Assembly: GCA_001179505.1 (NCBI GenBank)
Contig: CDMY01001064.1
Location: 124,001-188,000 of the forward strand
DNA length: 64,000 bases
Origin: Vitrella brassicaformis CCMP3155
Lineage: Eukaryota > Protista > Chromerida
Reading direction: 5' to 3'
A model generated the notes under the pieces. That model was not told where the DNA came from. It searched no databases and saw nothing but the letters and a program-made list of their open reading frames with translations. The stretch's first letter is position 1, and every line of letters begins with the position of its first letter. A program made the translations under genes and the position numbers. Positions 25,901-32,300 of this stretch are shown here, one piece after another.

Positions 25901-26850
25901 TTTCGGAGGCGGGGTGTTGGGGCGTGGGGATGACGGCCTCTTGCGGGGTCTGGGCTTCTCGGAATGAGCTTCTCCGTCCCTGGGGAAATACACGACTGCA
26001 GTGTGTTGGTTGTTCCCAACCGACGCACCTCGGGTGAGCAGCCCGTGCCTTCTTCCTCCTCCTCTTGTCCACATCGGGGTGCGCCGGTGCTCTGGGCTGC
26101 TGCGACGGTGGGTGCCAGGTGCTCGCCGCCTGATGGTACAGCCGCCACACCTCGCCCAGCAGCAGCTCTGTACGGGTCGTCAAGGCCTGCAGGCAGGCAA
26201 GGAAAGGAAGAATGGACATATATCAGTGTGGTGTGCGACAAGCGGGATCACTTCATCCACCATACTTCCTCCTTATGCTCACCTTACCTCATCCAGTGCC
26301 AGGTCATACGCCGCCACGACCTTGTCGGTCAGTTGCTTGGCAAACGTCGGCCGCACCCGTGGCAGGGACTCATCACCGCCGGCCTTGTGCAGCCTCTTGC
26401 ACCCCTCGGCGGACTCCGTCCACACCAACAGGGCCAACAGACGCCACAGCTCCACCCCCCAGCCCTCCACACCAAGCGCCTCATTGACGGCACGAATCAT
26501 CTGCACACCTTTGCGCAAGACCTCCTGGGCGCTCTGGCTGGTGGCGTCGACTGTGCGGCCTGAAAGCTGCTGCGCCGGCTGATGCTGCAGAGCCTCGACG
26601 ACGTCGATGAGTGTGCCGGGTGCGATGGGACCGGGCGGGTCAGCTGTGCGAAGGCGCTCCTGTATGCTGCACAGATGGACGACTTGAGCTGCCATGTGTG
26701 GCGGCAGGGGCTGGTGCGGTTGCTCCATGCCACCAGATGGATGAATCTCACCACACTGAAGGCAACGAGCGAGTCCGCAGCTGCGGGCAGGAGATGCGAA
26801 GCTGCCAGTGACTCATCATCTTCATCAATCCGCCACCAATCACCGTTCAT
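19979..26850 (-). CDS. Very large multi-exon hypothetical protein (acidic/basic disordered N-half, helical Leu/Ala/Trp-rich C-half)
   Basis: Chain of long minus-strand ORFs (26279-26728, 25785-26219, 25463-26074, 23511-25514, 22443-23381, 21835-22509, 20020-21210), with GT-AG sites checked in phase at several junctions, ending ...IKQEPMD*. Could be split into two genes; start (26728 or 26850) uncertain. Confidence 0.6.
23551..23597. repeat. (ACGA)n tetranucleotide microsatellite, one of many intronic (CA)n/(GT)n/(GACA)n/(GGAT)n tracts
   Basis: aacgtacgaacgaacgaacgaacgaaggaacgaacgaacgaacggac. Confidence 0.9.
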
Positions 26851-26911
26851 GAATGAGATCTGTTTCCTCCTCCTGCTGTAGGTTGGCGTCTAGGCAGAGT
26901 TGCCTTCCTCA

Positions 26912-26957
26912 GTATGTAGGGTATGTAGGGTCTAGGGTATGTAGGGTTTAGGGTATC
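26912..26957 (+). repeat. Degenerate telomere-like (TAGGG-containing) tandem repeat with G-quadruplex motif
   Basis: gtatgtagg gtatgtagg gtctagg gtatgtagg gtttagg gtatctg: five GGG runs with 4-6 nt loops, including one TTTAGGG. Confidence 0.75.
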
Positions 26958-27063
26958 TGCAAGCTCAATGGTTATCCTTCTTAAAAGAAAGGGCACATGC
27001 GATAACCCAGGAAGGCGTATGAGACGGCAGACATGAGACCTACTCAGCCGTGACTCATCGGTG

Positions 27064-27330
27064 ATGATTCATTGCCCGGAGATTCGGCGGCGGCTCATGT
27101 CCATCTTCAAGCAGATGTGTTACACCGCCCGACACGACTACCCAGGCGACGGCGAGAAGGAAATAGCCAAGATCAAGACATGGATCCGCCAGCGGCAGCA
27201 CCTCCAACAGCCCGAGGACCTCAAGAGGTCCCTGGCGTGGCTGCGCTTCTACCGGGGAGAGCTCGAGGCCACCATCTCACTCGCCAAGTATCGGGCAATG
27301 AAGAGGAGATACGACCGGACAGACAAATGA
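27064..27330 (+). CDS. LYRM5: LYR-motif protein 5 / electron transfer flavoprotein regulatory factor 1-like, intronless, 88 aa
   Basis: PEIRRRLMSIFKQMCYTARHDYP...ELEATISLAKYRAMKRRY aligns with the remembered LYRM5 pattern [20 protein letters not shown]...ELEALYFLRKYRAMKQRY. Confidence 0.85.
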   Translation: MIHCPEIRRRLMSIFKQMCYTARHDYPGDGEKEIAKIKTWIRQRQHLQQPEDLKRSLAWLRFYRGELEATISLAKYRAMKRRYDRTDK

Positions 27331-28798
27331 CCGGCGATTCGCTGACCCAGGCGAGTGACTGTATGGAGCGGTGCAAGGTGCTGTACAAGTCGGGCGGCCA
27401 GCGCCAGCAGTGCATCGTCCTTCTCGAGGAGACCCTCTCTTCGCTGCCGTCATGTGCCGAGCCTCCTGTTCTGGCGGAGCTGCATCACTGCCTGGGCGTT
27501 ATGATTGCGGAGGAGTCGTCTGATGCTTCTTGTTCTTCCCCTCCAAGCAGCAGGCGGGATTCACAAGACGCGGCTGAAGCTGCGGGTGCATTGCTTCATC
27601 TCGAGAAGGCCGTCGAGCTGCACCGCTCATGCGTCAAGTACTGGTGCAGCCTGGCGACGCTTCTCCAGCGGGCGGGGGATCACAAGCGCGCTCTCGAGGC
27701 AATCAGAGCGGCAACCGAGGTGGATGGCCACTGCATCAAGGCATGGGAAAGGCGTGGCAGTCTCTCACGGGGTCTCCGGCTTCACTCGGAGGCGCTGATG
27801 TGCTACGAGCGTCTCATGGCCGAATGTCCAGAGGATCCGTCTTGGCCCTTCTTCGCTGCTAAGGTGCTCTTGCGCGACGACAAGAGGTCTGCCAAAGCCG
27901 TGGCCTACCTCAGGAGGGCTGTCGAGCTGGACCCCACCAATGAGTGCGCGAGGTATTGGCTGGCGTTCTCTTCTGGCGAGGCGGATGGGGTCGACAAGGC
28001 GCCGTCATCGTACGTGCAGAAGCTGTTTGACGGCTACGCGCATTCATTCGAGTCACACCTGGTGGGCAAGCTGCACTATCAGACACCTCAGCTCGTGTGC
28101 CAAGTGCTGCGTGAGAATGGCCCCCTGCTATCGCCACCTGAGCCTCTGGACGCACTCGATCTTGGCTGTGGCACTGGGCTTGCTTGTCGGGCACTGAGGA
28201 GCGGTGACATGATGGAGCGCCTGGGCGCATCGCCCCTGACTCTTGTGGGTGTGGACCTGTCGGAGAAGATGCTGCGTGAGGCGGATGCTAGAGGGGGCTA
28301 CGATGCGCTGATACAAGGCGACATTCTTGAGGTGAGAAGATTAGGGGCATTCGACGACCTGTGCAGAACACACCTACTGTTTCCGTCTCTGCCGCTCTGC
28401 AGGTGCTCAAAAGGTGGCCAGACGTCGACATCTGTCTCCCCGCTGCGGCTGTGCGGCCCCCTCTGCCCCCGTCCTTCCACCTCATCGTGGCCTGCGATGT
28501 GTTTGTGTATATCGGCCACCTTGGGAGCGTCTTCGAGTGCATCTCTCCTCTGCTGCGCGAGGGGGGGCTGCTCATCTTCTCGACTGAGAGCGGCGACGCG
28601 ACTTCAGGTGACCGTGGATTCAGCCTGACTTCGACGGGCCGCTACTGCCACGGTCGGAGATATGTCGAAAGGGCGGTTGAGGCAGCTGGCGGGATGTCAG
28701 TGGTCTCCGTGAGGCACGAGATGCTTCGGAAGCAGGCCGGTGAACGCGTGATGGGCGATGTGTTCACTGTGAGGAGGAAGGCCACATCCTTGGCGTGA
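27327..28798 (+). CDS. TPR-repeat class I SAM-dependent methyltransferase (COG4976-like), one intron 28332-28402
   Basis: TPRs (ALLHLEKAVEL...YWCSLATLLQRAGDHKRALEAIRAA; AVAYLRRAVELDPTNECARYWL), YVQKLFDGYAHSFESHLVGKLHYQTP, SAM motif I ALDLGCGTG, LVGVDLSEKML, LIVACDVFVYIG, LREGGLLIFSTE and GRYCHGRRYV. Confidence 0.9.
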
Positions 28799-29359
28799 AG
28801 GGGCTTTTGGTTCGCGTTTTCCTTTGTGCGGACGATGGATGAGACTGCTTCTCGATGGATGAGACATATATGTGCTTCACGGTTTCACCACGCACAAATG
28901 GCTCACACTGCAGGCCAGGTTGTTCCGATGATTCTGTCCACCACCCGTCAAGTCAGACAGCACTCAACTACACTAATCAGGTCAGCTGTTCTGTCAAGTC
29001 GGGTCAAGTTAGTGCAGGGCGCAGCATTATCGAGCGCAACACGGATGGCAAAATTGACCGCTGACGAGTCAGTCAGACACGCAAAAGTCCCACGTAGTCA
29101 GGGACAGCCAAAAGACCGGAACATGGGTGCATCATACATACATGTCACACTTCTCCCCCCCTGTAGCCCTGCTGTCCGTACACACGTCTCTGTCCATGGT
29201 CGCACAGCCATTCGCACACGGAAGCTGGAATGGACGGAAGCAAGGGCGGACGGCTCATGCAGCCAGACTCGTTTTGCTTTCTCTGCAGAAACCACACGAA
29301 CGAAAGCAGTGGTCGAGACCCACTGATCGATCACTGTGTCCTTCGCCGTCTCACCGTTT

Positions 29360-32300
29360 TCAGCGTCGCTTTCGTTTCGCATCCATCCAACTGTGGTCCT
29401 CCTCCTCTTCTTGTTCTTCCTCTCGGCGGCGGCCACCGGAAGCTGCTTAACAACAAGCAGACAAAGCCAGAGAGTCAGTCATGTATGCATGCCCACATGC
29501 CCGCGTGCCTCACCGCTGCTGCCGTACTGAAGATCCCCCGTGGCCCCCTGGAACAGCTGCACGCCCTCCTGGGTTGGCCCGAAACCCCCCTCACCCCCAC
29601 CACCCCCACCGCCCTGCTGCGCAGCGCCAGCAGCAGCAGAAGATGCTGCTGCTGCTGCTGGAACAGCTGCCCCCTCCCCACTCCCTTGGTGGCCAGTGGG
29701 AGCGCCGGTGCCGAAGGACAGCGATGGTCCCGACAGCCGCCCCCGCCGTCCGCGTCTCCGCGAAGAGGGTGACGATGAGGGCGATGCCGATGCCGCCCCT
29801 TCTGCTGCTCCTGCTCCTGCTGCTGGTGCTGCTGCCCCACTGTCCTTGTCGGCCTGCTGGGGTGGGCCGAAGAGGGGGGCGGACTGGAAGGACTGGAGCG
29901 ATGTCGGCGATGCTGCTGCTGCTGCTGCTGTTGCCCCGAACAGATGGGCGGACGGCGGGAGTTGAAAGGCGAAGGACGAAGGGCTGCCCTTGAAGGCCAG
30001 CTCGGATGGCGGCCGTGGGGCGGCTCTGCCGGCGGTGTAGGTTCTGCCGAAGATGAGGGGGGTGTCCCTGTCCTCGGCCTCCTGCACACAACACACGCAG
30101 GAAGCCACGCATCGTGACGCATACATGATGTGGGTCTGTCTGTCTATCTGGTGTGTGCGCTTCCTTGCCTACACAGATACATACATATACTTACGCACCA
30201 TCCATTCCCACTCCCGCCTGGTCATGACCTCCTCCCAGCGGGCCGCGATGACCTCCTTCTCGCGCCGGTCCTTGTCCTTGACGAACACCTGCCAGTCCTG
30301 CGGACATCCGACACGCACAATCAATGAAAGGGAGTGGGATGAATGGATAGCTGCACCTCTTGTGGTATTGGGGAGAGCGGCAGCACGTCGCCTTGCCTCC
30401 AAGCCTGTCAACACAAAGACAACGCGGGACGGACAAATAAGTCATATGCACATCTGCACATCTGACGCATCACGAAGCCACGTACCAGCTCGACTGAGTG
30501 GTCGCCCCCTCCGTCGGCCTGGTCAACCAACACATGACAGAGAGACAGACAGACAGACAGACAGGAGAGTGACACATACATGCAGCTATAAATCTGTGGG
30601 GTGAGGTGAGTGGGTGCCAAGGTCCCATCTTACCTTTAGGACAAACTTGCGACGCAGCTCCAGGGAGTCCATCAGGTGGGGCTGGTACTCCACGTCGCTA
30701 TCGGCGGCGCTGCCCAGCTGCCCACTCTGGCCCACTCCCCTACAGGCAGACACATACGCACACAGACACATACGGACACCAACGACAGGCACAAATGACC
30801 GACCACATGAGACATGGTGGGTGACAGGCGACTTACCACGAGAAGATGTCCCCTGTCTGGTTGGTGGCCACCGTGTGGGTCCTCCCGGCACCGACGGAGA
30901 GGAAGCGCACCCCCTGAGAGACACAGGCAGACAGGCAGAGAGCCATAACAGTGACTTGTCCTTCGCCTGTGAGAGCTCACCTCGACCTTCCTGCTGCAGG
31001 GCACCGTCACGTCGACCAGGCGGTTGGAGACATCGAGGCCCGTGTTCTCGCCTGCACTACAGATACGCACAAACGAATGCGTGTGTGTATGGGGGTGGGT
31101 TTGATGTGTACATGTATCCTCCGTGGCCACATGTGTTGGCATTGCGTCCTACCCTTGCCCCAGGTCATGACGCTTCCGTCACGGATGAGGGCGATAGTGT
31201 GGAACTGCCCGCCACACAGGCTCACCACCTGCACACACACAGAGATAGATACCCAGACAGACAGACCACTTGCAGTCGCTGATCATCGGTCATGTCCACA
31301 CGTGTGGCTTACGTTCTTGTCGAACAGGGCCGGGATCTCGGTGAGGCGGTCGACGGTGTTGGTCTTGGTGCTGATGCCCACCTCCCCACACGAGTTGGAC
31401 CCGCACCTGCATCGACAACACACACGCGAGCCACACACCAATGTTCGTGTGCATGTGTGGGCCGCTGCCCGACCTTTCCCCACCCATAATGGCGTTTGCC
31501 GTCGTTGGCGGCCAACACCGCCGCCACGAAGGTGGCATTGCCACACGCCCACACGCGCCTGATGTCGGCCTCTTTGCCCAATCCCAACCTGCACGTGACC
31601 AACACAAAACACAGATGCATCTTCGGGGTTGCCTAAGTGCCCTCCATCTGTGGCGCCACTCACTGGTGTGTGGTGCGTCTGGTGGGGAAGAGGGCGGCGT
31701 CGAATGCCGCGCGGTCAGTGGGGCCTGTGGCGGGCGGCTCGGGGAAGGTCAGCTGGGAGAAGTCGTTGGCCCCCCACACGTACAGCTGACACACACACAC
31801 AAATACAAACAGACAGACAGACAGACATCGATGGTGGATAGTGTGTGTTGTGTGGTGGTACCACTTCCTTCGAGAGTGCAACGGTGTGGTTGTCGCCGCT
31901 CGCCAGCTGCTCCACGTCCATCAGGCCGGGCAGGCGATAGGGATAGAGCTGCTTCTTGACCGCACCACCCACCTTGACGCCGATGCGCTGGCCGTTGAAG
32001 ACCTGCAGCGACAAAACCAACCGCACAGACAACGGTGCAAACTCATGCACGTTTGTATGCGTGTATGTTTGTTTAGCTCGCTTACGGCATGGTTGAGGGC
32101 TACGGCGAGGCCCACAGCGCCCTCATCCGCCAAGACTAGCCTGGCCTTGCTGCACACACACACACACACACACGGGTGTGACGCGGATGCTGTCTGTCTG
32201 TCTGTCTGTCCGCCCTCTTGCTCACCTCGTGTCGTCGGCGTCCCGTCGAATGTGGCTCACTGTCGTCGGCAGCCGGCCCTCGAAGAACCCCCGCACTTGC

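Follow-up and report, generated by a model that had tools for sequence, protein, structure and literature searches.

Does a chromerid make two proteins from one messenger RNA (mRNA) where the stop codon of one gene overlaps the start codon of the next? The question is raised by a pair of open reading frames (ORFs) in Vitrella brassicaformis CCMP3155 (assembly GCA_001179505.1), within a 64,000-nucleotide (nt) stretch of contig CDMY01001064.1 that we call the window and to which all coordinates refer. ORF1 encodes a small LYR protein resembling ETFRF1/LYRM5, and ORF2, which overlaps it by 4 nt, encodes a methyltransferase with TPR repeats. We consider with moderate confidence that both are carried by a single bicistronic mRNA. 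This reading is supported by the zero intergenic space at the ATGA overlap, by spliced contigs that run through both ORFs, by the flat depth of RNA cover across the junction, by a paralogue that keeps the overlap, by selection on ORF2 and by precedents elsewhere. A preliminary description of this DNA had rightly assigned it to an alveolate. The locus comprises the following features:

26976..27063, plus strand: transcript 5' leader with three short upstream ORFs (uORFs); its start is taken from RNA contigs.
27064..27330, plus strand: ORF1, an 88-codon ETFRF1/LYRM5-like LYR-motif protein with no intron; ATG 27064-27066, TGA 27328-27330.
27327..27330, plus strand: ATGA stop/start overlap of ORF1 and ORF2, read from the sequence, identical in the paralogue (copy B) and bridged by RNA.
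27327..28331, plus strand: ORF2 exon 1, encoding the TPR repeats together with the first half of a class I S-adenosylmethionine (SAM) methyltransferase domain (motif I, LDLGCGTG).
28332..28402, plus strand: ORF2 intron, 71 nt, GT..AG; joint 28329>28401 (cut +2) in RNA run X1.
28403..28798, plus strand: ORF2 exon 2, the remainder of the methyltransferase domain; stop TGA 28796-28798.
28799..29282, plus strand: 3' untranslated region (UTR) of unspecified length; RNA cover runs on into the 3' end of a convergent minus-strand RCC1-like gene.

The two ORFs are read in different frames and have separate starts and stops, and ORF2 consists of 466 codons in two exons separated by a single intron. The ORF2 ATG at 27327-27329 (caaATGAcc) has 4 nt in common with the ORF1 stop, and the intronless LYRM5 ORF ending in this overlap, as first described, can be read directly from the sequence. 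By homology both ORFs are genuine genes rather than chance ORFs, because ORF1 matches Toxoplasma and ETFRF1 proteins and ORF2 matches TPR methyltransferases and their domains. The reference annotation begins ORF1 at Met12 (77 amino acids, aa) and ORF2 at Met13 (454 aa, ATG 27363), and thereby avoids the overlap. Homologues align from about residue 4 of the 88-aa ORF1 product, which supports the start at 27064 and the 88-codon form; the N-terminal alignment of ORF2 with bacterial homologues does not single out a start Met. The methyltransferase frame is also open 5' of the ORF2 ATG, with a listed ORF from TTG 27072 and a preceding stop at TGA 27051-27053. The preliminary description had drawn attention to this open frame, which is as listed but carries no weight, because 23% of codon-order shuffles of ORF1 also leave the methyltransferase frame open (P = 0.23).

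Transcription of the locus was assessed from unstranded short-read contigs, and four public runs were compared over positions 26000-30000. Runs X2 and X5 behave as DNA, with the intergenic region and introns covered; runs X1 and X4 behave as RNA, with zero cover at 26000-26937 and spliced joints that include the GT..AG intron of ORF2. In a transcriptome assembly, two 2.4-kb contigs (L003 and L004) have their first base at 26987 and span ORF1, the ATGA overlap and ORF2, and the ORF2 intron is missing from both, as expected of spliced RNA. The RNA cover of X4 begins at 26976, such that the onset is sharp (26976-26987) in two independent assemblies and lies about 80 nt 5' of ORF1. A 417-nt contig of X1 (27230-27646) also crosses the overlap. 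In X4 unitigs identical to the window copy, depth was 18.7 over the leader and the 5' part of ORF1, and 29.3, 15.5 and 19.4 over ORF2 exon 1, with no step in either direction at the junction and neither the ORF1 nor the ORF2 part in large excess. The RNA runs contain no contig start, loose end or depth step within ORF1 (among the best-supported loose ends listed), and no joint or alternative splice in X1, X4, L003 or L004 removes ORF1. An exact look-up of the 88-aa ORF1 product returned no further transcript contigs. Co-expression of ORF1 and ORF2 from one transcription unit is supported by these data.

Two ways of separating or joining the products at the RNA level were considered and rejected. 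Alternative splicing that would remove ORF1 or fuse the ORFs is represented by no joint in the RNA runs or transcript contigs. For spliced-leader trans-splicing that would resolve the pair, no loose end near 27300 is among the best-supported ones listed, and no report of such trans-splicing in chromerids was found in the literature.

A second, inverted copy of the locus (copy B, L001:4235-7118) lies on the same contig, about 45 kb from the window copy (copy A). It is 90.5% identical from 12 nt 5' of the ORF1 ATG through the LYRM5, methyltransferase and RCC1-like genes, and its 5' leader is unrelated, with a homology breakpoint 12 nt before the LYRM5 ATG. The ATGA is retained in copy B, as is an intact LYRM5 gene, in which only two of the six differences change an amino acid. 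Its methyltransferase gene is a pseudogene with four disabling changes, of which copy A has none: a 1-nt deletion leading to TAG after about 22 codons, a TGG>TAG substitution (27744-27746), loss of 2 nt (28502-28503) and a 4-nt insertion following 28702. This dead gene is annotated as a 232-aa protein (P0003). B-type variants occur in the RNA runs all along the dead methyltransferase, and therefore transcription from the LYRM5 promoter reads through the second ORF, even a useless one.

Comparison of the two copies by Nei-Gojobori counts gave a non-synonymous to synonymous rate ratio (omega) of 0.14 for ORF1 and 0.34 for ORF2, the latter with 31 synonymous changes versus 33 non-synonymous ones (neutrality rejected at p = 4e-5). 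By these counts both ORFs are under purifying selection, and ORF2 is functional, its coding sequence having been subject to selection during most of the period that followed the duplication. The ATGA overlap, being common to both copies, predates that duplication (synonymous divergence, dS, ~0.07-0.1), and copy B shows that LYRM5 and the methyltransferase can be uncoupled. Additional synonymous constraint in the 3' part of ORF1 was considered and rejected, as the 0 differences seen against an estimated ~2.7 expected are not significant and gene conversion fits equally well.

Several observations weigh against a bicistronic mRNA. The same unstranded short-read contigs that join the two ORFs also fuse the unit with the convergent minus-strand gene, and L003, L004 and the X1 contigs are block mosaics of copies A and B. 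In Toxoplasma, Prorocentrum and two metagenomic relatives, LYRM5 is not followed by a methyltransferase gene. With regard to translation, ORF1 contains four internal AUGs against 4.0 expected from shuffles, in addition to three AUGs in the leader; its 88 codons make it a long ORF1 for efficient reinitiation; and the predicted fold of the 120-nt stretch around the AUGA is no more stable than that of shuffled sequences (z = 0.16).

The first of these points limits what the contigs can say. L003 and L004 extend into the RCC1-like gene over two CT..AC introns, and because they merge this convergent gene, their contiguity is no proof of a single molecule. This RCC1/WD40-like gene has its 3' end in 28800-29600 and its CT..AC introns at 29283-29354 and 29443-29513, and the assemblies join it to the methyltransferase unit because the 3' ends of their transcripts overlap or abut. 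The A/B mosaic is most simply put down to assembly. Its origin in a second strain carrying a mosaic locus was rejected, since B-type contigs also come from a DNA run in which the two copies must both be present, and mosaic contigs were not used to judge the intactness of ORF2 in another strain.

The main rival to a bicistron is a pair of separate overlapping mRNAs, in which the methyltransferase transcript would start within the leader or ORF1 and the LYRM5 mRNAs would either stop within the methyltransferase gene or have a 3' end in common with it. In that case the 4-nt overlap would reflect mere tight gene packing in a compact genome. Short-read contigs that merge a convergent neighbour cannot tell overlapping transcripts from one, and the depth of the window copy in X4 rises slightly from 18.7 (leader and ORF1) to 29.3 (start of ORF2). 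The length of ORF1 and its internal AUGs would, moreover, leave ORF2 poorly translated if the mRNA were shared. Weighing against separate mRNAs are an ORF1 in which no contig start, listed loose end or depth step was seen, the sharp onset of cover at 26976-26987 in two independent assemblies, and a paralogue whose dead methyltransferase is still transcribed behind LYRM5. We judge separate mRNAs to be unlikely, although they are the alternative that best withstands the data. The one-mRNA co-expression put forward in the preliminary description thus stands as far as continuous RNA cover, flat depth, the overlap kept in the paralogue and selection can carry it, and from these we infer that both ORFs lie on a single RNA molecule.

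A bicistronic mRNA of this kind would start at about 26976-26987, contain both ORFs and have one intron (28332-28402) removed. Both proteins would be made from it, with ORF1 translated by scanning ribosomes. The AUGs that bear on the translation of ORF2 are:

ATG 26997 (2 codons), ATG 27019 (5 codons) and ATG 27033 (6 codons), plus strand: leader uORFs, from the list of ATGs.
27180..27182, plus strand: candidate alternative AUG within ORF1, in the methyltransferase frame and in strong context (gacATGg); it would add 49 residues to the enzyme.
27363..27365, plus strand: next in-frame Met after the ORF2 ATG (MERCKV), taken as the start in the reference annotation; Leu in paralogue B.

The start codon of ORF1 is flanked by G at -3 and A at +4. 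For ORF2, AUG 27327 has C at -3, and AUG 27363 has T at -3 and G at +4. Three of the AUGs internal to ORF1 are in frame and the fourth (27180) is in the methyltransferase frame. In green algae, leaky scanning leaves its signature in an ORF1 start of weak context and in an avoidance of AUGs ahead of ORF2 (PMC11291117). That signature is absent here, because the internal AUG count of ORF1 equals the shuffle expectation, and the missing AUG depletion argues against simple leaky scanning, as far as sequence composition can indicate. The likeliest way to ORF2 would be termination at UGA 27328-27330 followed by reinitiation, either at the overlapping AUG 27327 or, 33 nt downstream, at AUG 27363; ribosomes that had translated a short leader uORF and resumed scanning beyond the ORF1 start could make an extra contribution.

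The ATGA overlap brings stop and start into the adjacency expected for termination-reinitiation, in the window copy and in the paralogue alike, and this arrangement would fit such a mechanism. Termination-reinitiation at AUGA or UAAUG overlaps is used by victoriviruses, influenza B (M2/BM2) and caliciviruses, in which the ORF1 stop overlaps the ORF2 start by 1-4 nt and the process depends on an upstream structured or 18S-complementary element. The Vitrella junction resembles these in its stop/start overlap and differs in having no excess structure around the AUGA (120 nt, z = 0.16). No Rfam match above threshold was obtained at the junction, only sub-threshold ones, and both a structured reinitiation element and a known RNA family at this position were rejected on these results. 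Termination-reinitiation, which the preliminary description had proposed specifically, is thus favoured by the overlapping codons, but it is one of several routes, ORF1 is long and no structured element was found upstream of the AUGA; we put it forward as a tentative possibility only. Among the routes, reinitiation at 27327 or 27363 would rank first, followed by initiation at 27180 by ribosomes that skip the ORF1 start. Outside this ranking, a programmed -1 frameshift fusing LYRM5 to the methyltransferase was rejected, given that the ORF1 frame contains no X_XXY_YYZ heptamer and that the open frame has P = 0.23.

The second of these routes amounts to a distinct version of the bicistron, in which leaky scanning or delayed reinitiation after the leader uORFs would lead to a start at AUG 27180. 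The methyltransferase would then carry a 49-residue N-terminal extension from the alternative frame of ORF1, over a short dual-coding stretch. AUG 27180 has the best context of the AUGs in the region (gacATGg), lies in the open methyltransferase frame and is preceded only by AUG 27064, which is in moderate context, and by two AUGs in weak context. Furthermore, the third uORF ends 10 nt before the ORF1 AUG, so ribosomes that resume scanning after it would tend to skip 27064. The open frame itself is not unusual, however, and the abundance of Ala, Pro, Arg and Gly in the extension is what GC-rich coding DNA would give when read off-frame. The extension aligns with nothing in homologues. Comparison of copies A and B over the extension yielded one difference, too few to gauge dual coding. 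A start at 27180 is, in our view, rather improbable. That ORF2 is not translated at all, and is a relic in the long 3' UTR of a LYRM5 mRNA exactly as in paralogue B with its intact LYRM5 and transcribed methyltransferase pseudogene, is very hard to credit for a copy A that retains 466 codons and a spliced intron intact against four disabling changes in B, has an omega of 0.34 with a significant synonymous excess and conserves its SAM-binding motifs.

The identity of the ORF1 product was examined with phmmer over 1.8 billion representative sequences, which returned 20 relatives. These include Toxoplasma gondii TGME49_268985 (E 6.7e-14), a Prorocentrum cordatum protein (E 5e-10) and the mammalian ETFRF1/LYRM5 cluster (E 3.5e-4), and no named LYRM subfamily other than ETFRF1 appears among the named hits. 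The match to the mammalian cluster bears out the 'LYRM5' label given in the preliminary description. Alignment with the relatives extends from about residue 4 to a C-terminal KYRAMKRRY motif, in which K75, Y76, R77 and Y83 are invariant or nearly so, and residues 14-16 (I-F-K) align with L-Y-K of ETFRF1 in a position where relatives have L/I/V-Y/F-K/R. ORF1 alone has no match to the Pfam family Complex1_LYR (PF05347) at E <= 1 and no significant match in Pfam or the PDB. Complex1_LYR is, however, matched by six of the 16 aligned relatives (best 1e-15), and a profile of the ORF1 family matches LYRM4 (6e-4) and a human protein deposited as MIEF1 upstream open reading frame protein (E 0.006).

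An AlphaFold2 model of ORF1 (pLDDT 84) predicts a three-helix bundle with helices at 5-25, 30-43 and 50-87. Its best PDB superpositions are with ISD11/LYRM4 (TM 0.73/0.86, root-mean-square deviation 1.1 A), L0R8F8 and LYR subunits of complex I, where the Foldseek E-values are weak, the protein being short. Compared with mammalian ETFRF1 (LYRM5), the ORF1 product is of equal length and has the predicted three-helix LYR fold and the C-terminal KYRAMKxRY motif, but it is only ~30% identical, has IFK in place of LYK and does not match the Pfam LYR model significantly. We call it ETFRF1/LYRM5-like because of its phmmer relatives, its C-terminal motif, the matches of its family profile and the LYR fold of its model. 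It thus appears to be a member of the ETFRF1/LYRM5 branch of LYR proteins, with binding to electron transfer flavoprotein (ETF) and removal of its flavin as a putative function.

For ORF2, TPR_1/2/8/14 and Methyltransf_11 passed the Pfam cut-offs, within a wider set of methyltransferase-family matches (Methyltransf_11/12/23/25/31). It matches TPR-repeat methyltransferases at E ~1e-29, with 1839 relatives at E <= 1e-3, and can be aligned from end to end (29-45% identity) with proteins that bear the name 'predicted TPR repeat methyltransferase'. The LDLGCGTG, VGVDLS and post-II motifs align with nine homologues, and the SAM-binding motifs are kept. The gene neighbourhood of the best match is typically bacterial, the nearest Atlas clusters are bacterial, and no eukaryote-labelled relative was found among the best 120 hits, Vitrella's own paralogue aside. 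Beyond generic TPR proteins, no characterised or solved relative was found. PF10294 (Methyltransf_16, the METTL20/ETFBKMT family) is absent from the Pfam matches of either exon at E <= 0.1. On this evidence ORF2 is a member of a mainly bacterial family of TPR-repeat methyltransferases and is not METTL20-like. It shares with the bacterial proteins the N-terminal TPRs, the C-terminal Methyltransf_11/25 domain, 29-45% identity and a conserved motif I, and differs in having a spliceosomal intron and a host-like GC content.

A more far-reaching scenario can be built on this affiliation, in which a bacterial methyltransferase gene entered the Vitrella lineage, landed behind a host ORF and came to be expressed by prokaryote-style ATGA termination-reinitiation on the LYRM5 mRNA. 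We regard it as a long shot. If true, it would provide a natural example of a transferred bacterial gene gaining eukaryotic expression without a promoter of its own, as well as an independent alveolate case of a recurring link between LYR proteins and bicistrons, otherwise seen in green algae and, going by its deposited name, in the human MIEF1 upstream-ORF protein.

The LYRM5-methyltransferase pair is not conserved in the manner of an operon, because Toxoplasma, Prorocentrum and two metagenomic relatives have LYRM5 on its own and the two genes are uncoupled in copy B. Homologue searches brought up no Chromera orthologue of either ORF. The preliminary description had named conservation of synteny and overlap in Chromera and other alveolates as a check, and had suggested that methylation of ETF-beta might link the two proteins functionally. 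The pairing is absent from Toxoplasma and Prorocentrum. The functional link finds no support: ORF2 has no METTL20-type match, LYRM5 occurs alone in both of these alveolates, and the paralogue lost its methyltransferase but kept LYRM5.

Bicistronic mRNAs of green algae, cited as a precedent when the locus was first described, do provide one. LYR-motif proteins of five subfamilies are common in green-algal nuclear bicistrons (PMC7896298), and some bicistronic loci of Auxenochlorella have overlapping stop and start codons (PMC11291117). As at the Vitrella locus, the loci of Chlamydomonas, Chromochloris and Auxenochlorella place a small LYR protein of mitochondrial type and a second, unrelated ORF on one transcript, at a tiny inter-ORF distance and with a separate stop and start for each ORF, which in some Auxenochlorella cases overlap. 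The algal examples are, however, documented by single-molecule reads and proteomics, whereas that of Vitrella, a chromerid alveolate, is known from short-read contigs. Algal ORF1s also combine weak start context with AUG avoidance, in contrast to the 4 AUGs against 4.0 expected in Vitrella ORF1 and the three upstream AUGs in its leader.

Among alveolates, polycistronic transcripts have been reported in the apicomplexan Cryptosporidium parvum (PMC11761812, preprint). These resemble the present case in that nuclear genes of a compact alveolate genome are co-transcribed, there as defined RNAs of 2 to 4 genes. They differ in being based on long reads, in often being accompanied by internal monocistronic RNAs and in including no known LYRM5-methyltransferase pair. 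For Vitrella itself, full-text searches of the literature on polycistrony found only plastid polycistrons.

The human MIEF1 upstream-ORF protein (L0R8F8 / AltMIEF1) offers a more distant parallel. It has a LYR fold, is described in PDB entries as encoded by an upstream ORF in the MIEF1 mRNA, and is matched both by the ORF1 family profile (E 0.006) and by the predicted fold of ORF1. It belongs to another LYR subfamily, concerned with mitoribosome assembly, and its downstream gene is unrelated; its upstream-ORF origin is taken from its deposited name. A LYRM5-like protein of Diphylleia rotans (P0134, from an EukProt transcriptome) is labelled '.p2' on its Trinity transcript. The label points to a further ORF of greater length on that transcript, which may thus represent an additional bicistron with a LYR protein.

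The Vitrella locus is thus probably an example, in a new lineage, of an already known arrangement for making two proteins from one mRNA. If confirmed, it would constitute the first description of a nuclear bicistronic mRNA from a chromerid and would extend eukaryotic polycistrony to the photosynthetic relatives of apicomplexans. An alveolate LYR protein placed like its green-algal and human counterparts would suggest a general reason for the placement, such as low-level or stoichiometric co-expression. The locus also constitutes a natural test of reinitiation versus leaky scanning, because its ORF1 lacks the AUG depletion of the algae, and it comes with an internal control in a paralogue that has a dead ORF2 and has retained ORF1 and the overlap. 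Since the reference annotation shortens both products to avoid the overlap, similar tight pairs are probably hidden elsewhere in the Vitrella genome.

One further feature lies immediately upstream of the transcription unit:

26912..26956, no strand assigned: telomere-like tandem repeat (TAGGGTn units), containing the 'telobox' AAACCCTA at 26942-26949, minus strand.

This is the sole AAACCCTA telobox in the 64-kb window and lies about 30 nt 5' of the first transcribed base seen. The non-homologous upstream region of paralogue B also contains AAACCCTA, about 105 nt before its ATG and in the opposite orientation. The telomere-like repeat that bears it may be a promoter-proximal element.

Two observations concern the flanks of the locus. 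Downstream, a low-complexity, repeat-rich coding stretch at 29640-29840, which matches many places in the genome, shows many loose ends and back-and-forth joints (29661>29807, 29835>29642) in all four runs, DNA and RNA alike. Upstream, a divergent minus-strand gene of 1995 aa has its start codon at 26728; the region of its 5' part (26000-26937) is covered by DNA and uncovered in both RNA runs, and the gene may be silent under the conditions of those runs.

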